Source: Caecitellus pseudoparvulus (taxonomy: Eukaryota; Protista; Bigyra: Bicosoecida). From it: DNA of 64,000 bases. The stretch spans positions 1 through 64,000 of the forward strand of contig CBFFRQ010000086.1 in the NCBI GenBank assembly GCA_965644315.1, given 5' to 3'. The notes beneath the pieces were generated by a model. That model ran no database searches, was not told the origin of the DNA, and worked only from the letters and a program-made list of their open reading frames with translations. The translations under genes and the position numbers were made by a program. Positions 1 through 4,984 of this stretch are shown piece after piece. Each line of letters opens with the position of its first letter. Within the stretch, counting starts at the first letter, position 1.

Positions 1-878
1 GCATCTCCCAGGCCCTCCATCCTCAGCACCAGCCCGGCCTGCACAGACTCCACAGTCATGAAGGACGCAGGCTCCAGATCAGGTATGGTCTGCACGGCGC
101 AGGCGGCCGCCGCGGCCTCCGCCTGTGAGAAGCCGGGAGCTGGCAGCAGTGCGTGGCCGCCTCGCGGCATGAAGATTCGTGGTGTCAAGGCAGGTGCCGT
201 CACATCCAGCACGCCCAGAGGGGCGATGACTGCTGTGGACAGGCCTGCGAAGTTCGTGGCGATAGCTGTGAGCCACAGCGTGTCGCCGCCCTCCAGTGCG
301 CTGGAGTTCAGGGTCACCTGAGCCAGGCGGCCACCTGCCACCTGGTCAAGATCAGTCCACGAGGCACTGGATCGCACGGCGTCCCAGCTGCCCACTTCCC
401 GCATGTGCGGCATGGCTTGAGATCCCAGAGCCGTGGCACCCACCGTGAGTGTGAGGGAGCTGAGGCCGGCACCAGCATCAGCCCAATTCGCCAGGGACAG
501 CTTCACGTGGCTCATGGGCGCGATGGACGGCGGGTCACTGCTAGTCTGCGCCACCGCCTCTGCAAGCTGGCCAGCTCTGATATGGGCTGCACTTCCAGCA
601 GACAGAGCCGAGACCTGCAGCGTGCGGGGCGCACAGGCGCTCGCGGCGAGAGCAGGCAGGCGGAGGGTGCGGGTCCACGGCAGGGCTTGCTGCAGCGTGG
701 CAGCTGACACGGAGGCGGCAGTGTTGGTGCCGCATGCTTGCACATCTGGGAGCAGTGTCAGTGTGCCAGGCCGTGGGTGGGTGCGCACGAGGCGCACAGT
801 GGGAGAGGACAGCTGCAGGAGCCCGCCGCCTGTCTTGCGCACCGCGACTTGCACCCGGAAGCCCTGTGCACTTGCCAT
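1..878 (-). CDS. 5'-truncated paralog of the C-terminal FN3-like part of the giant protein at 4985-20448; runs off the window edge; possible pseudogene fragment
   Basis: Hand translation from ATG 878 gives MASAQGFRVQVAVRKTGGGLLQLSSPTVRLVRT...VGATALGSQAMP...LNSSALEGGDTLWLTAIATNFAGLSTAVIAPLGVLDVTAPA...VQAGLVLRMEGLGDA. This is collinear with SAPSFRVRVLVGKVGGGTLEVTSPTVRLIRT...VGATALGSQAMP...LDASALEGGDTMWLTAVVTNYAGLSTVLAAPVGILDATAPA...VQAGLNLHLEGLGDA of the giant ORF. There is an in-frame TGA upstream at 897-899. Confidence 0.85.
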   Translation of the reverse strand, partial: MASAQGFRVQVAVRKTGGGLLQLSSPTVRLVRTHPRPGTLTLLPDVQACGTNTAASVSAATLQQALPWTRTLRLPALAASACAPRTLQVSALSAGSAAHIRAGQLAEAVAQTSSDPPSIAPMSHVKLSLANWADAGAGLSSLTLTVGATALGSQAMPHMREVGSWDAVRSSASWTDLDQVAGGRLAQVTLNSSALEGGDTLWLTAIATNFAGLSTAVIAPLGVLDVTAPALTPRIFMPRGGHALLPAPGFSQAEAAAAACAVQTIPDLEPASFMTVESVQAGLVLRMEGLGD

Positions 879-1010
879 GTTGGCATGAACTGTATGTCAC
901 ACAGAGCAAGACAAGGCTGGCAATCTGTGAAGTCCATACACGCTACGCAACCCCCAATGTTGAACGGCCAGACATGTGGCACGATATTGCATTCCTTGAG
1001 TCGTCTCGTC

Positions 1011-3782
1011 TCACGCCTCCTTTCCCATGAACTCTTCAAACATCGCGTCAAGTTTGTCTTGCGATGTACACGGCTGGCCAGAGCCCGCTGCCTCTTCTGG
1101 TTTGGCACCAGCATTCTCCAAGTATACCCCCACCTCATCGCATGCTTCCTGCAGGATATCCCAGTGCCCCCGCAGGTTGGTGCCGTCCACGATGCGGATG
1201 CCCAGCTGCCCCTCCACATGCCCTCGCATGCCGTCTGGGACTGTGTGCGTCAATGCGATCATGGCGCCGCCATCCTCAACGTGAAAATCCTCCCCCCCGA
1301 CGTAGGCCTGGAAGAGCCTGTCCCATGCTGGCATCTGATGAGGCCTTAGTTTGCGCTTGTTGTACATCGCTTTCGCGGCAGCAATCAAGTCACCCACAGC
1401 ACGCACGACGGGCACGTGCCTTCGCTCGATGTCCTCCCGCTTCGCTCTGCCGTACGGCTCCACACCCATCAAGCCTTCCACTGCCGTCCGCACCGCGGCA
1501 GCTCCCGCTTTGCTCTCGTCCCCTTTCTCCAGCGTCTTCTGGTTGGCTCGCTTCACCTGCACACGCATGATCCACACAGTCGTCACGCCGTCCTTCTCTT
1601 CGTAGGACACCCGAATCACGTCGCCACCGTAGGCATCTGGGAGCTCCTTCATCCAGAATGAACCCTTGCGGAGAGCCAAGTATTCCTTGAAACTGTCGCC
1701 AGCCTGCTCAAGAGCCTCGTACGCAGCTCGTGCACGTGCACTCCAATCTGCCTCAGCCCCGGCTGCCTGGCCTCCACCGCCTGCTCCGCCAGCTCCCGCT
1801 GCGGCGTGTGGTGGTCCAACACTCTCCGCTGGTGCAGCCGCTTGTGCTGGTGGGTCTGCTGTGCGGCCTGTCACGACTGTCATGCGCACCCCCGCTAGCT
1901 TCCCGCCTTCGGTGTCGCTGTTGCTGGCCTTGACAGCTTGTTTGGGGGGACCTGCTTCGCCTTCGCTGCTCTCTTCTTCTCCACCTTCGTCCTCCACGAG
2001 GACATCACCATCTTGGTCTGGCATCCTTGCCAGGGCACGAGTAATGGGCAACTCGGCCCTCTCTCCGCACCCGTCATGTCGCATCCACACCATGATGTCG
2101 TCGTGCACATCCCCACGCCCAAACCTGCGGTACACTTCAAGGCTGGCGAGTCCCAGGCCTTTCCCGTGCTCCACAAGCCAACCTTTGTCGATGGCGTCGT
2201 CAACCAGTCTCGTGGCGGTCTTGGTGGCGGCATCTGTTCTCGCTGTTCCTTCCCCTGCTGCTGCAGCGGCTGGCTGCTCAGGAATCCCTGCCAGTTTTCT
2301 CGTGAGCTTGTCTCTTGGTACGACGTAGTTTGAGGAGCGGAATCCGAGCGCCGTGGCTCTCGGCAGCTTTGCCCGCTTGGCAGCCGGCAAGCTCGCTAAG
2401 AATGGGTCGATCACCTGCTGGAATAAGGTGCTGGGTGGGCTGCTGTCAGGGTGTCGCCGAGGTACTGGGAGGTCTGGCCAGGGCGCACCTGGAATCCAAT
2501 CAGGCAGACACTTTCTTGCAGCACGCATCAGTTCCCGGGGTGTGTGCCCGTACAGCTCCAGGACCTGCTCCAGGGAGGACTTGAGCTTCTCCCCATCGCT
2601 CGTCTCCTCTTCCCCCAAGCGCTCCAGAAACATCGCGTCAAGCTTCTTCGCCATTTCCAGCGCTGCTTCTGACGGCTGCCTCTCCTCCTTCGCCACTGTA
2701 CCAGACGACTCCTGTGCTGCGTCCACCACTGCACCAGGAGTCTGCGCCTCTGCTTCCTCTCTGTACAGGGTGAATGAAGGGTCCACCGTCTTGCACGCGT
2801 GTGTGAGCAGGAAGGCCTTGAGGGACGTCTCCGTCCACACGGCACCTTCAATGCGCATGTGTTGGAATTTGTCCCCGTTCCAGTTCGCCCGCAGTGACGC
2901 ATGTGTGTACTCAGGTGGGAAGTCATGGGCTGATCCGTCAGACAGGAACAGCTGTCGGGAGCGCTGAAAGCTTGCACAGATCACCATGCCAATGGTAGGA
3001 TCGTCCACGCCAAGGATGCCCTGCAATTGCCCATGCCATCGTTTGGCGAGGTTGGAGTCGAACTTGAGTCCCTGGAAGAGGTGTTCCGCTTCATCAACAA
3101 TTACGATGACCGCGATGCCAGCTTGCCTCAGTAAAGCGCTTGCGATGTCCAGCCGGTCATGATTCCCGGCATTCTTCACTGCTTCGCGCACTTCAGGTGA
3201 CAGAGCCTTGGTGCCGTCACGCAAGGTAAAGATGGCTGGAAGCTGCTCCTCGTGCACTTGTTCGTCTTCCGAACCTGTCGCATGGGTGGCGAGATTGCGG
3301 AGAACCTCTGCCACCTCTGGGTGTCGATGCAAGCGGCCAAGCTTGTTGGCGATGTTCTTGAAGAGCCACTCGTGGAAGTTCTTTGGGTCCGTGGAACTGC
3401 GTCGTTGGAGATCGATGCGGAAGCAGATTGTGAGCCTTCCGTCTGCCTCTTTCCTGTTGTCCTCCTCCATAACAGTGACAATCGCTTTGAAAAGGCGGGA
3501 CTTCCCGACGCCCTTTGGACCGCAGATCAAGCACGTCTGTGCCTCTTCATGTTCGTGCATGCTGTTTATCATGGCTACCATAGCAACAAACGCTGGCTTA
3601 AGGTGTTCCATGGGCAGAAACTTGGCAGCCTTGCTGAGCACCATCTTCTTCCACAGCTCTACAGCTTTCTTACGCAGGCGGTTTGGGTGGTCAAGAGGCA
3701 ATCCAGACCTGCACAGCCTCTCAAACGGCCCTATCTTGTGCCCACTGGCTCCAGCCTCCGTGGGTACTTCTGCTGCCGCCAT
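1011..3782 (-). CDS. P-loop NTPase (STAND/AAA+-like, Crinkler CR-NTPase-like) + wHTH + C-terminal Mrr-like PD-(D/E)XK nuclease, about 923 aa, intronless
   Basis: Walker A LICGPKGVGKS, Walker B VIVIVDEAE, sensor-like MVICAS, GxP-like YGHTPREL and wHTH-like LVDDAIDKGWL. Nuclease-like motifs follow: GERAE / PDAYGGDVI / RVQVK / IRIVDGTNL. The ORF track starts at GTG 3872; the first ATG is 3782. Confidence 0.75.
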   Translation of the reverse strand: MAAAEVPTEAGASGHKIGPFERLCRSGLPLDHPNRLRKKAVELWKKMVLSKAAKFLPMEHLKPAFVAMVAMINSMHEHEEAQTCLICGPKGVGKSRLFKAIVTVMEEDNRKEADGRLTICFRIDLQRRSSTDPKNFHEWLFKNIANKLGRLHRHPEVAEVLRNLATHATGSEDEQVHEEQLPAIFTLRDGTKALSPEVREAVKNAGNHDRLDIASALLRQAGIAVIVIVDEAEHLFQGLKFDSNLAKRWHGQLQGILGVDDPTIGMVICASFQRSRQLFLSDGSAHDFPPEYTHASLRANWNGDKFQHMRIEGAVWTETSLKAFLLTHACKTVDPSFTLYREEAEAQTPGAVVDAAQESSGTVAKEERQPSEAALEMAKKLDAMFLERLGEEETSDGEKLKSSLEQVLELYGHTPRELMRAARKCLPDWIPGAPWPDLPVPRRHPDSSPPSTLFQQVIDPFLASLPAAKRAKLPRATALGFRSSNYVVPRDKLTRKLAGIPEQPAAAAAGEGTARTDAATKTATRLVDDAIDKGWLVEHGKGLGLASLEVYRRFGRGDVHDDIMVWMRHDGCGERAELPITRALARMPDQDGDVLVEDEGGEEESSEGEAGPPKQAVKASNSDTEGGKLAGVRMTVVTGRTADPPAQAAAPAESVGPPHAAAGAGGAGGGGQAAGAEADWSARARAAYEALEQAGDSFKEYLALRKGSFWMKELPDAYGGDVIRVSYEEKDGVTTVWIMRVQVKRANQKTLEKGDESKAGAAAVRTAVEGLMGVEPYGRAKREDIERRHVPVVRAVGDLIAAAKAMYNKRKLRPHQMPAWDRLFQAYVGGEDFHVEDGGAMIALTHTVPDGMRGHVEGQLGIRIVDGTNLRGHWDILQEACDEVGVYLENAGAKPEEAAGSGQPCTSQDKLDAMFEEFMGKEA

Positions 3783-4984
3783 GCCTGCGAGATCATGCAA
3801 GGCGGGTTCTACCGGCGCAAGGGCTGGCAACGCGGCCGCAGCAGTAGCCCGAGATCTCGCAATGGACGCCACTTCACGTCACAAAGCGTGCACTCACTGC
3901 TTGCTCTTTGTGCTTCTCAGCCACCTTTACTGCACAGCTGGGACGCGCAGCTTCGAACTCGACGCCTACGCCGCTTGCAAAATGGTGCAGTGCGGAAATT
4001 GAGCCGCCACACACCACGCAACGCCAGCTCCGGCTGCGCCCAGCCAGGCGCGCGCCAGGTGCAAGCAACCACCGAAGACAATGATGTGCTGCACATGAAC
4101 TGTGATGGGCCGAGTGCGAAGGTGGCGATGGACGTGATGGGGGGTTTGGGTGTTGCATGGTGAATGCCGTTGCCGGCAAGAATGCTTCTGCGCTGAGCGT
4201 GAGGGGTGTCAAGCCCCCCTCAGACGTGCACAACGACGCAGGGTGAGCCTCCAAGCTCCCTGTACTCCCTCATGTCCCAGACTCGCGTGATCTCGACAGT
4301 TCATGCTACTTGGTCTCGAGATTACCCACCTGCGCCACTCCACAGCCAAGTCCGGCTCCAACGGCAGCTCCCACATACACGCTCCCACATGCTTCCTGTC
4401 GAGCGCATGGCGAGGCGCCTGAGCAAGGGGAGCCCTCCCTTGGCCATGGCCACCTACTGTGGTTGGTTGCAGCCCAGTCGCTTGGTGCTAGTACATTCCC
4501 CACCGCCCTGCATGACTCTGTGGTCCTCAGACGAAGCCCAAAGTCATGTCATTTTCTTGGGCAAGTTGGTCACGTTTGCAATCACGAGCTCGGTAGGACT
4601 CGCCTTCAACGCGAGGCGGTGTCCCCACGTGCAGTTCGAAATGCTTGCATGTCCACCACCGAGTAGCACTGCGCCACAGGCCCCTGAGAGCTTGCGATCA
4701 GCGACAAACCCTGCTCAAGTGCCGGAATGGTGTGCTCTGTCACAGACGCTGCATGTGCGCCCTTGCCCACGTCCAACCTCAACATGAAGGTGACAAGGCA
4801 CTTTGCTACAGCTCAGCTACACGTTGTGTCTTGTAGTGTGGGGACTCCCCACATCTCCGCGTGCTCGGTCAAGTCCGCGATCTGCTGCAATGGGGTCAGA
4901 CCGGGTCGCGCAGCGAGCGTGCAGCACGACGACCGCATGGGAGACAGAAAGCTGCATTTGGAAGGTACACCACCTGCACAGCAG

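Follow-up and report, generated by a model that had tools for sequence, protein, structure and literature searches.

ATPase-gated nucleases recur in prokaryotic defence, as in the Avs, Hachiman and type IV restriction systems, and in the Crinkler effectors of eukaryotic pathogens. To our knowledge, there is little evidence for ATPase–nucleases of this kind that are intracellular, lack a header domain and have expanded in a free-living protist. The gene described here lies on the minus strand at positions 1011–3782 of a 64,000-nucleotide stretch from Caecitellus pseudoparvulus (assembly GCA_965644315.1, contig CBFFRQ010000086.1, positions 1 to 64,000); this whole stretch is referred to as the window, and its contig as C86. 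Taken as one statement, with architecture, family, mechanism and role all included, the account that we favour, at a little better than even confidence, is that the gene encodes an ATP-gated, oligomerising DNA endonuclease of intracellular conflict.

Among the C-termini of Crinkler proteins, the combination of a nucleoside triphosphatase (NTPase), a helix–turn–helix (HTH) and a restriction endonuclease (REase) domain is given as the commonest architecture in the passage of PMC5289972 that cites Zhang et al. 2016. DUF234 has been described as a PD-(D/E)xK family linked with AAA+ ATPases (PMC3424549), and Steczkiewicz et al. 2012 (PMC3424549) assigned AF1548 (1y88) to the Mrr_cat group. An earlier note on the present DNA had read the gene as an NTPase, a winged helix–turn–helix and an Mrr-like nuclease joined in one chain, a reading with which the confident models and fold searches reported below agree. 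At fold level, the models show three modules: an AAA+ ATPase with its lid, a winged helix, and an Mrr-type PD-(D/E)xK nuclease interrupted by large insertions.

Gene model and folds of the two halves

For definition of the coding sequence (CDS), the open reading frame was compared with those of its paralogues. The frame occupies 1011–3872 and amounts to 953 aa when counted from a GTG; the first ATG, at 3782, gives a protein of 923 aa with the N-terminus MAAAEVPTE (coding positions 3782–1014, stop codon 1011–1013). Close paralogues share this ATG, and the frames upstream of it differ or are closed among them; the CDS was therefore taken as 3782–1014 plus the stop codon. Pairwise comparison of the gene with five paralogues gave overall ratios of nonsynonymous to synonymous divergence (dN/dS) of 0.28–0.51, with values below 1 in nearly every domain that stayed low even where the synonymous divergence (dS) exceeded 1, and no region of robust positive selection was found when dN/dS was followed in sliding windows. 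The gene is thus intact, intronless and real, and purifying selection acts on its protein. All motifs listed in the earlier note were recovered by translation at the coordinates given there, as was the end of the gene. These motifs are more than chance occurrences, since they are conserved in family alignments of 34–40 sequences.

The host genome is GC-rich and intron-poor. As the earlier note had pointed out, the gene is lower in GC than its giant lectin-like neighbour of 5088 aa, with 59.3% against 66.5%; GC at third codon positions (GC3) is 0.65 against 0.75. Every paralogue, whether old or young, has a GC3 of 0.60–0.68, below that of most neighbouring genes. No hydrophobic, signal-like stretch was found in the first 57 residues when the translation was checked, and the N-terminus of this copy is acidic, Ala-rich and not presequence-like. 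About 45 residues precede the ATPase, and no Crinkler header was matched by Pfam at E values up to 1. The description of the gene as free of introns, signal peptide and Crinkler header therefore stands. A separate feature was seen at the other end of the protein, where the C-terminal tail KLDAMFEEFMGKE (1016–1055) is a diverged repeat of the internal helix KKLDAMFLERLGEE (2606–2645); the two are 75% identical as DNA, and the repeat is confined to the close subfamily.

For structural characterization, AlphaFold models were built on family alignments for the N-terminal (residues 18–560) and C-terminal (residues 555–923) parts. The N-terminal model reached a predicted local distance difference test score (pLDDT) of 83.3 and a predicted template modelling score (pTM) of 0.84. 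In Pfam searches with the 953-aa frame, a P-loop ATPase was detected at residues 101–277: AAA_22 scored above its cut-off (5.7e-7), ATPase_2 fell at or just below the Pfam cut-off (2.9e-7 and 6.3e-8), and NACHT (E 0.1) and nSTAND3 (E 0.07) were insignificant for the window copy. Across 40 family members, AAA_16 was matched in 36, AAA_22 in 35, TniB, the fourth most frequent, in 8 and ATPase_2 in 5. Foldseek returned 53 matches in the PDB at E ≤ 0.001, led by ORC/Cdc6 subunits, the archaeal ATPase_2 proteins PAB2304 (2qen) and SSO1545 (2fna), RdrA, HslU and the mitoribosomal protein mS29.

An exhaustive structural search with VIA, in which Z scores within one unit of each other were treated as tied, gave Orc1/Cdc6 at Z 14.4 (316 residues aligned, model residues 31–539), PAB2304 at Z 14.1 (323 residues aligned) and SSO1545 at Z 12.8. 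TnsC entries followed at Z 13.7, 12.8, 12.0 and 11.4, MuB at Z 11.8, a wheat NLR at Z 12.1, WRR4A at Z 11.8 and Avs3 at Z 10.7. The alignments to Orc1/Cdc6 and PAB2304 span model residues 29–539 and so run through the winged helix. The features of AAA+/STAND-like proteins are all present, namely the two Walker motifs, a helical lid in which G..P(R) is conserved, and a winged helix behind it. Most members keep the hhhhDE pattern of Walker B; in one subfamily, DE is replaced by DG, DD or DK, which predicts that its proteins may bind ATP without hydrolysing it efficiently. As modelled, the N-terminal half is an initiator/STAND-like AAA+ ATPase that carries a helical lid and ends in a winged helix. 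Because the VIA scores are tied, it is not assignable specifically to ORC, ATPase_2, TnsC or STAND.

The C-terminal model (pLDDT 82.3, pTM 0.80) was matched most closely in VIA by AF1548 (Z 7.1, 2.7 Å over 114 residues), followed by AspBHI (Z 6.3), LlaBIII (Z 5.8) and MspJI (Z 5.6), all of these scores lying in the range (Z < 8) in which a match may be due to a common arrangement. Further matches were to HamA, Cdn1, CdiA-CT toxins, Card1, FokI, BspD6I, Can2 and PaqCI, and to SduA, McrC, Avs4, HindIII and NucS; PD-(D/E)xK nucleases made up roughly three quarters of the best 50 rows among PDB representatives. Neighbours by shape in the ESM Atlas were HamA, Mrr_cat, DUF4365 and PDDEXK_4, with template modelling scores of only 0.26–0.38. 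Foldseek against the PDB was weak for this half (best match MspJI, E 0.014), and Pfam, PADLOC and NCBIfam searches with the whole protein left the C-domain unmatched.

The residues expected of the fold are placed as they should be. Most of 34 sequences retain a Glu on the first helix, an Asp that opens a strand and QxK on the strand after it. Around the Glu of motif I, the pattern AELP..RALAR is conserved across the family. In motif II, the Glu (in KE) is nearly invariant, the Gly invariant and the Asp kept in most members, with the GD at model residues 166–167 opening the strand at 168–176. In RVQVK, the Arg is invariant, and the Gln and Lys are present in most members and lost in several. 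Both the QxK motif and the closest structural similarity point to the Mrr group, and the sequence profile Mrr_cat (PF04471) gave no match. The models therefore support a restriction-endonuclease-like fold for the C-terminal half, with membership of the PD-(D/E)xK group at the level of fold, which is not proof of homology; the domain would presumably be catalytically competent. By sequence, it defines a family absent from Pfam.

In both halves, structure prediction and fold search recovered what the earlier note had led us to expect: ATPase_2/AAA+ folds for the N-terminal part (Orc1/Cdc6, PAB2304, TnsC), together with the Walker A, Walker B, GxP-like and winged-helix segments, which are also borne out by translation and family conservation, and an REase fold for the C-terminal part (AF1548 best). 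The ordered PD-(D/E)xK motifs of the Mrr QxK type likewise hold up, the model being confident, the fold searches in agreement and the conserved residues at the expected positions of the fold. The acidic/Gly-Ala linker of more than 100 aa proposed between the first two nuclease motifs holds only in part. About 135 aa do separate motif I from motif II, and only some 37 aa of them are disordered, an insert that varies in length among paralogues, with indels and short repeats. Elsewhere between the two motifs, the elements are conserved and modelled with confidence: two helices, an SN-D-S motif and a strand reading VLV. Positions of all features are collected in the table.

Table. Features of the ATPase–nuclease gene and its immediate flanks, in window coordinates
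Feature	Positions	Strand	Basis
Complete single-exon CDS, 923 aa plus stop	1011..3782	-	Open reading frame list, shared ATG, translation, dN/dS against paralogues
AAA+ P-loop ATPase core, residues ~46–317	2832..3647	-	Pfam, model, structural matches
Walker A, GPKGVGKS	3498..3521	-	Translation; G-x-x-G-x-G-K-[ST] kept in 37 of 40 family members
Walker B, VIVDEAE	3084..3104	-	Translation; hhhhDE in most members
GHTPR in helical lid, at GxP / sensor-2-like position	2535..2549	-	Translation; G and P nearly invariant in alignment
Winged-helix-like module ending the N-terminal half	2115..2246	-	Helix-hairpin-helix in model, residues 496–537
Restriction-endonuclease-like PD-(D/E)xK domain, Mrr-type, with insertions	1116..2120	-	Model, VIA, ESM Atlas
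Nuclease motif I helix GERAELPITRALAR, with conserved Glu	2025..2066	-	Model helix, residues 23–31; structural alignments start at ~residue 18
Disordered Gly/Ala/Pro-rich insert in nuclease domain	1752..1862	-	pLDDT <50, model residues 87–123
Nuclease motif II KELPDAYGGDVIRV, with Glu713, and Asp721 at strand start	1608..1649	-	Model strands 155–160 and 168–176
Nuclease motif III, RVQVK, the Mrr-group QxK variant	1551..1565	-	Model strand 179–190
IRIVDGTNL	1173..1199	-	Translation
Upstream spacer, duplicated with the gene	3783..4984	-	Paralogous loci match at 75–83% identity; no convincing open reading frame or repeat
3' fragment of a paralogue of the giant lectin gene, in the tandem unit downstream of the gene	1..886	-	DNA comparison

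Family, age and genomic arrangement

To place the gene among its relatives, the protein was searched against the genome (30.6 Mb in 215 contigs) and against public collections. In the genome, at least 44 candidate loci match the protein, at identities from 98% down to about 30%. The 98% match on C33 was rejected as an independent paralogue, as C33 (400–38551) is collinear with C86 (1–38000) at 97–98% identity over at least 38 kb. This stretch of C33 is either an alternate haplotype kept in the assembly or the product of a recent duplication of very large size, and the 98% match is accordingly an allele or part of a large duplicate. Many copies are truncated or carry in-frame stops. The 923-aa frame is intact in the window copy and in several copies only 35–45% identical to it. 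With paralogues diverged to about 30% identity and saturated in dS, the family is old in its lineage.

Outside the genome, relatives are rare. An exhaustive phmmer search of 1.84 billion protein representatives returned only 42, many of them 93–99% identical to copies in this genome and so derived, through metagenomes, from this organism or a sister of it. Others, at 25–45% identity, belong to different uncultured eukaryotes, the surrounding genes being eukaryotic. Word-indexed searches with profiles gave nothing beyond fragments of the family and one protein labelled 'Symbiodinium sp. KB8'; this is 89% identical to a paralogue on C121 and is probably a contaminant related to the present organism in a dinoflagellate culture or assembly. 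A search of viral and metagenome contigs with the single protein gave no related loci. The family is thus nearly confined to this protist lineage. The sphingosine-1-phosphate lyase encoded nearby has its nearest named homologues in Cafeteria and another bicosoecid (51–52% identity). In one distant metagenome relative (L058:3543–6525; ENA ERZ27316688, k141_148587), a gene of 598 aa lies 44 bp upstream of a 380-aa nuclease part on the same strand; the size of the former would fit a candidate ATPase-only member, and the arrangement is either a split gene or a frameshift.

The neighbours of the ATPase–nuclease gene are the lectin gene and a fragment of a lectin paralogue, and the latter belongs to the unit in which the gene is duplicated: the gene itself, its 1.2-kb upstream spacer and the 3' fragment at 1–886. 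This last segment is about 90% identical to the 3' parts of lectin genes on C45, C2, C140, C146 and C122. On C121 (1–15373), this unit recurs in tandem with a period of 5.84 kb, and C86 starts within an array of this kind. For one given pair of copies, dS changes several-fold from one part of the gene to another, a mosaic that points to recombination or gene conversion among copies. No terminal inverted or direct repeats, target-site duplications or transposase were found next to the gene. A 10-nt recurrence of CATGAACTGT was considered and rejected as a meaningful repeat, being at about the level of chance; by our own estimate, 3400^2/4^10, or roughly 11 coincident 10-mers, would be expected.

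The telomere repeat of this genome is TTAGGG. Two copies, one on C31 and one on C81, are 26 and 20 kb, respectively, from CCCTAA-capped telomere ends, and most of the others are at most about 110 kb from a contig end or on contigs of 12–70 kb; two are internal (C19 at 234 kb and C62 at 386 kb). At the non-telomeric end of C81, the other end being that with CCCTAA repeats, positions 506107–506256 resemble small-subunit ribosomal RNA by eye, and the contig presumably breaks in ribosomal DNA. A TTAGGG-type interstitial tract of about 400 bp was also noted on C5 (10582–10994), 10.5 kb inside the contig and in addition to its terminal array.

The family therefore grows by tandem and segmental duplication, recombines, decays to pseudogenes and is enriched toward chromosome ends. 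This genomic pattern argues against recent arrival and against transposition, and fits a long-resident, rapidly turning-over family. The recent arrival proposed in the earlier note, horizontal arrival included, was rejected because the lower GC3 is common to all paralogues, ancient ones included, and because the family reaches down to about 30% identity with saturated dS. Nor is the label 'mobile' sustained, as the copies spread together with lectin-gene fragments by tandem or segmental duplication and are free of inverted repeats, target-site duplications and transposase. The gene is not single-copy, its loci in the genome being many, and with its rarity elsewhere it is very unlikely to be housekeeping. 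Both this and the restriction-endonuclease-like fold differ from the outcomes that would have counted against the earlier note.

On C113 (2507–8301), C119 and C83, a full-length copy adjoins one of about 556–610 aa that is without most of the nuclease domain. The ATPase halves of each pair are 96–98% identical (98% on C83). Identity falls to 82–88% in a conserved downstream flank on C113 and C119, and to 78% in a conserved upstream flank on C83. The tree places each short copy next to the full-length gene beside it. It looks as if gene conversion keeps the ATPase modules of these pairs matched, and the arrangement suggests that nuclease-bearing and nuclease-less subunits may form hetero-oligomers. 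The subfamily of the window copy has no short partner.

Proposed mechanism and rival explanations

In the mechanism that we propose, ATP binding would make the AAA+ modules assemble, probably on DNA contacted by the winged helix, by analogy with ORC/Cdc6, TnsC and MuB. Assembly would then bring the nuclease domains together and license cleavage of DNA, the role being restriction of invading DNA, such as that of viruses, or an abortive, self-destructive response. Restriction-like attack or an abortive response seems the most economical assignment because the closest nuclease structures are those of modification-dependent or ATP-coupled restriction enzymes. Language-model neighbours, which are leads only, include prokaryotic fusions of ATPase_2 with Hjc and of STAND with Mrr_cat. 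An intracellular role in defence or conflict can reasonably be inferred, and secreted-effector and housekeeping roles are less likely.

Several results weigh against an ATP-gated endonuclease of this kind. No sensor repeat array (LRR, TPR or WD40) was found in the models or by Pfam in the window protein. Pfam searches with 34 family C-domains at E values up to 10 gave no match, Mrr_cat included, and a profile search of the PDB with the C-domain gave nothing better than E = 1. When the DUF234 and Mrr_cat models were run against the whole genome, the family was unmatched; the six-frame search with Mrr_cat matched solely one unrelated locus on C28. To these are added the VIA scores of the C-domain, which at Z 5–7 are moderate, so that the case for a nuclease fold is carried by the uniformity of the match list and the placement of the motifs. 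Several family members are without the catalytic Lys or Asp, and therefore not every copy is an active nuclease. Finally, the raw copy counts overestimate the number of paralogues, because the assembly contains haplotig-like duplicates.

The abundance of copies in tandem arrays near chromosome ends, with pseudogenes among them, could also be expected of a selfish element, that is, a module taken from transposon genes (a TnsC/MuB-like ATPase with a TnsA-like nuclease) that still promotes its own duplication, for instance through breaks repaired by self-copying in subtelomeric arrays. TnsC and MuB are indeed among the best structural matches of the ATPase, 8 of the 40 members have a TniB match in Pfam, and GC3 is below that of neighbouring genes. 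The TnsC and MuB scores, however, are tied with those of Orc1/Cdc6 and ATPase_2, the gene is adjoined by none of the repeats, target duplications or transposase of such an element, and the lectin-gene fragments carried in the duplication units speak for ordinary segmental duplication; a dN/dS below 1 reflects selection on the protein and does not indicate the beneficiary. A selfish element is thus considered unlikely. The same truncated and interrupted copies, and the loss of catalytic residues in several members, would also fit a functionless remnant, a decaying family whose frame is open here only because the duplications are young. This is very improbable given a dN/dS of 0.3–0.5 even between paralogues with dS above 1, the intact frame in this copy and in several that are only 35–45% identical to it, and motifs that are kept at 25–30% identity in relatives from other organisms.

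A Crinkler/RHS-type effector, in which the protein would be a toxin delivered into prey, competitors or hosts and its nuclease would damage the DNA of the target, shares with the present protein the commonest Crinkler C-terminus, as given in the cited passage, and an expanded, variable family, as effector families often are. The 45 or so residues before the ATPase, however, hold neither a header recognised by Pfam nor a signal-like stretch, the exhaustive phmmer search returned no oomycete or other named Crinkler, and the organism has free-living, bacterivorous flagellates as its nearest named relatives. The suggestion of a Crinkler-type effector thus fails on header and signal peptide, and this explanation is held to be decidedly unlikely. 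Least probable of all is a housekeeping factor of DNA metabolism or of an organelle (replication, repair, mitochondrial nucleoid) that has been duplicated incidentally. The Orc1/Cdc6-like fold and the appearance of mitoribosomal mS29 among the Foldseek and language-model neighbours would accord with it; dozens of divergent copies and pseudogenes, near absence outside the lineage, a relaxed dN/dS of 0.3–0.5 and an acidic, Ala-rich N-terminus unlike a presequence would not.

A more far-reaching version of the endonuclease account is offered as speculation and is unlikely. The family would be an innate-immunity system of protists, in which full-length 'executioners' assemble on foreign DNA, such as that of giant viruses, and are checked or primed by the adjoining nuclease-deleted paralogues. 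Subtelomeric duplication and recombination would create new specificities, in parallel to NLR clusters and to the abortive-infection nucleases of prokaryotes. Three features make the family a tractable candidate where cell-autonomous immunity by nucleases, or conflict within the genome, is to be studied in unicellular eukaryotes: the nuclease domain escapes recognition by sequence, the copies are counted in dozens, recombine and lie toward chromosome ends, and some have nuclease-less partner genes. If its role proves ordinary, a clean annotation is still gained for an otherwise 'hypothetical' gene family.

Comparison with known systems

The CR (Crinkler/RHS-type) effectors have the same module order, P-loop NTPase, HTH or winged helix and REase-fold nuclease, and, as far as the cited passage describes them, are likewise an expanded, variable eukaryotic family with proposed descent from prokaryotic mobile or conflict genes. 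Unlike them, the window protein has no ubiquitin-like header, LFLAK-type motif or signal peptide, and no sequence link to named Crinkler proteins emerged from the exhaustive phmmer search. With header and signal peptide absent and no such link found, the protein is not classed as a Crinkler.

The systems Avs3/Avs4 and the NLRs similarly join an NTPase to a winged-helix switch, in fusion with a nuclease effector. In Avs/STAND proteins, however, the nuclease is N-terminal, whereas here it is C-terminal; the window protein has no TPR, LRR or other sensor array, and its NACHT and nSTAND matches in Pfam are insignificant. As its ATPase also matches Orc1/Cdc6, ATPase_2 and TnsC at least as well as STAND, the proposed 'NLR/Avs-like' assignment is not supported. 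An AAA+ ATPase combined with a restriction-fold nuclease is also found in the Tn7/Mu systems (TnsC, MuB and TniB with TnsA), and the match to TnsC/MuB almost equals that to Orc1/Cdc6. Here, unlike in Tn7/Mu, both activities reside in one chain, and there are no DDE transposase, element ends or target duplications.

With the prokaryotic ATPase_2 (PF01637) proteins PAB2304 and SSO1545, the whole ATPase part can be aligned from one end to the other, its lid and the winged helix included, and the protein also resembles the fusions of ATPase_2 to PD-(D/E)xK domains (DUF234, Hjc, Mrr_cat). The present family differs from these fusions in being eukaryotic and multi-copy; the ATPase_2 profile matches only 5 of its 40 members, and the DUF234 model misses it. 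For the C-domain, the best structural matches are to the Mrr_cat group (Mrr, AF1548/1y88, MspJI, AspBHI and the nuclease heads of LlaBIII and Avs4), with which it shares the D ... QxK variant on consecutive strands and a first helix bearing Glu. It differs in escaping the Pfam Mrr_cat model and in its size, about 335 aa with inserts of roughly 110 and 60 aa, compared with a compact Mrr core of 100–130 aa without inserts. As modelled, the protein is best described as a header-less ATPase–nuclease that appears Mrr-like by fold and motif yet stands outside the Mrr_cat profile.

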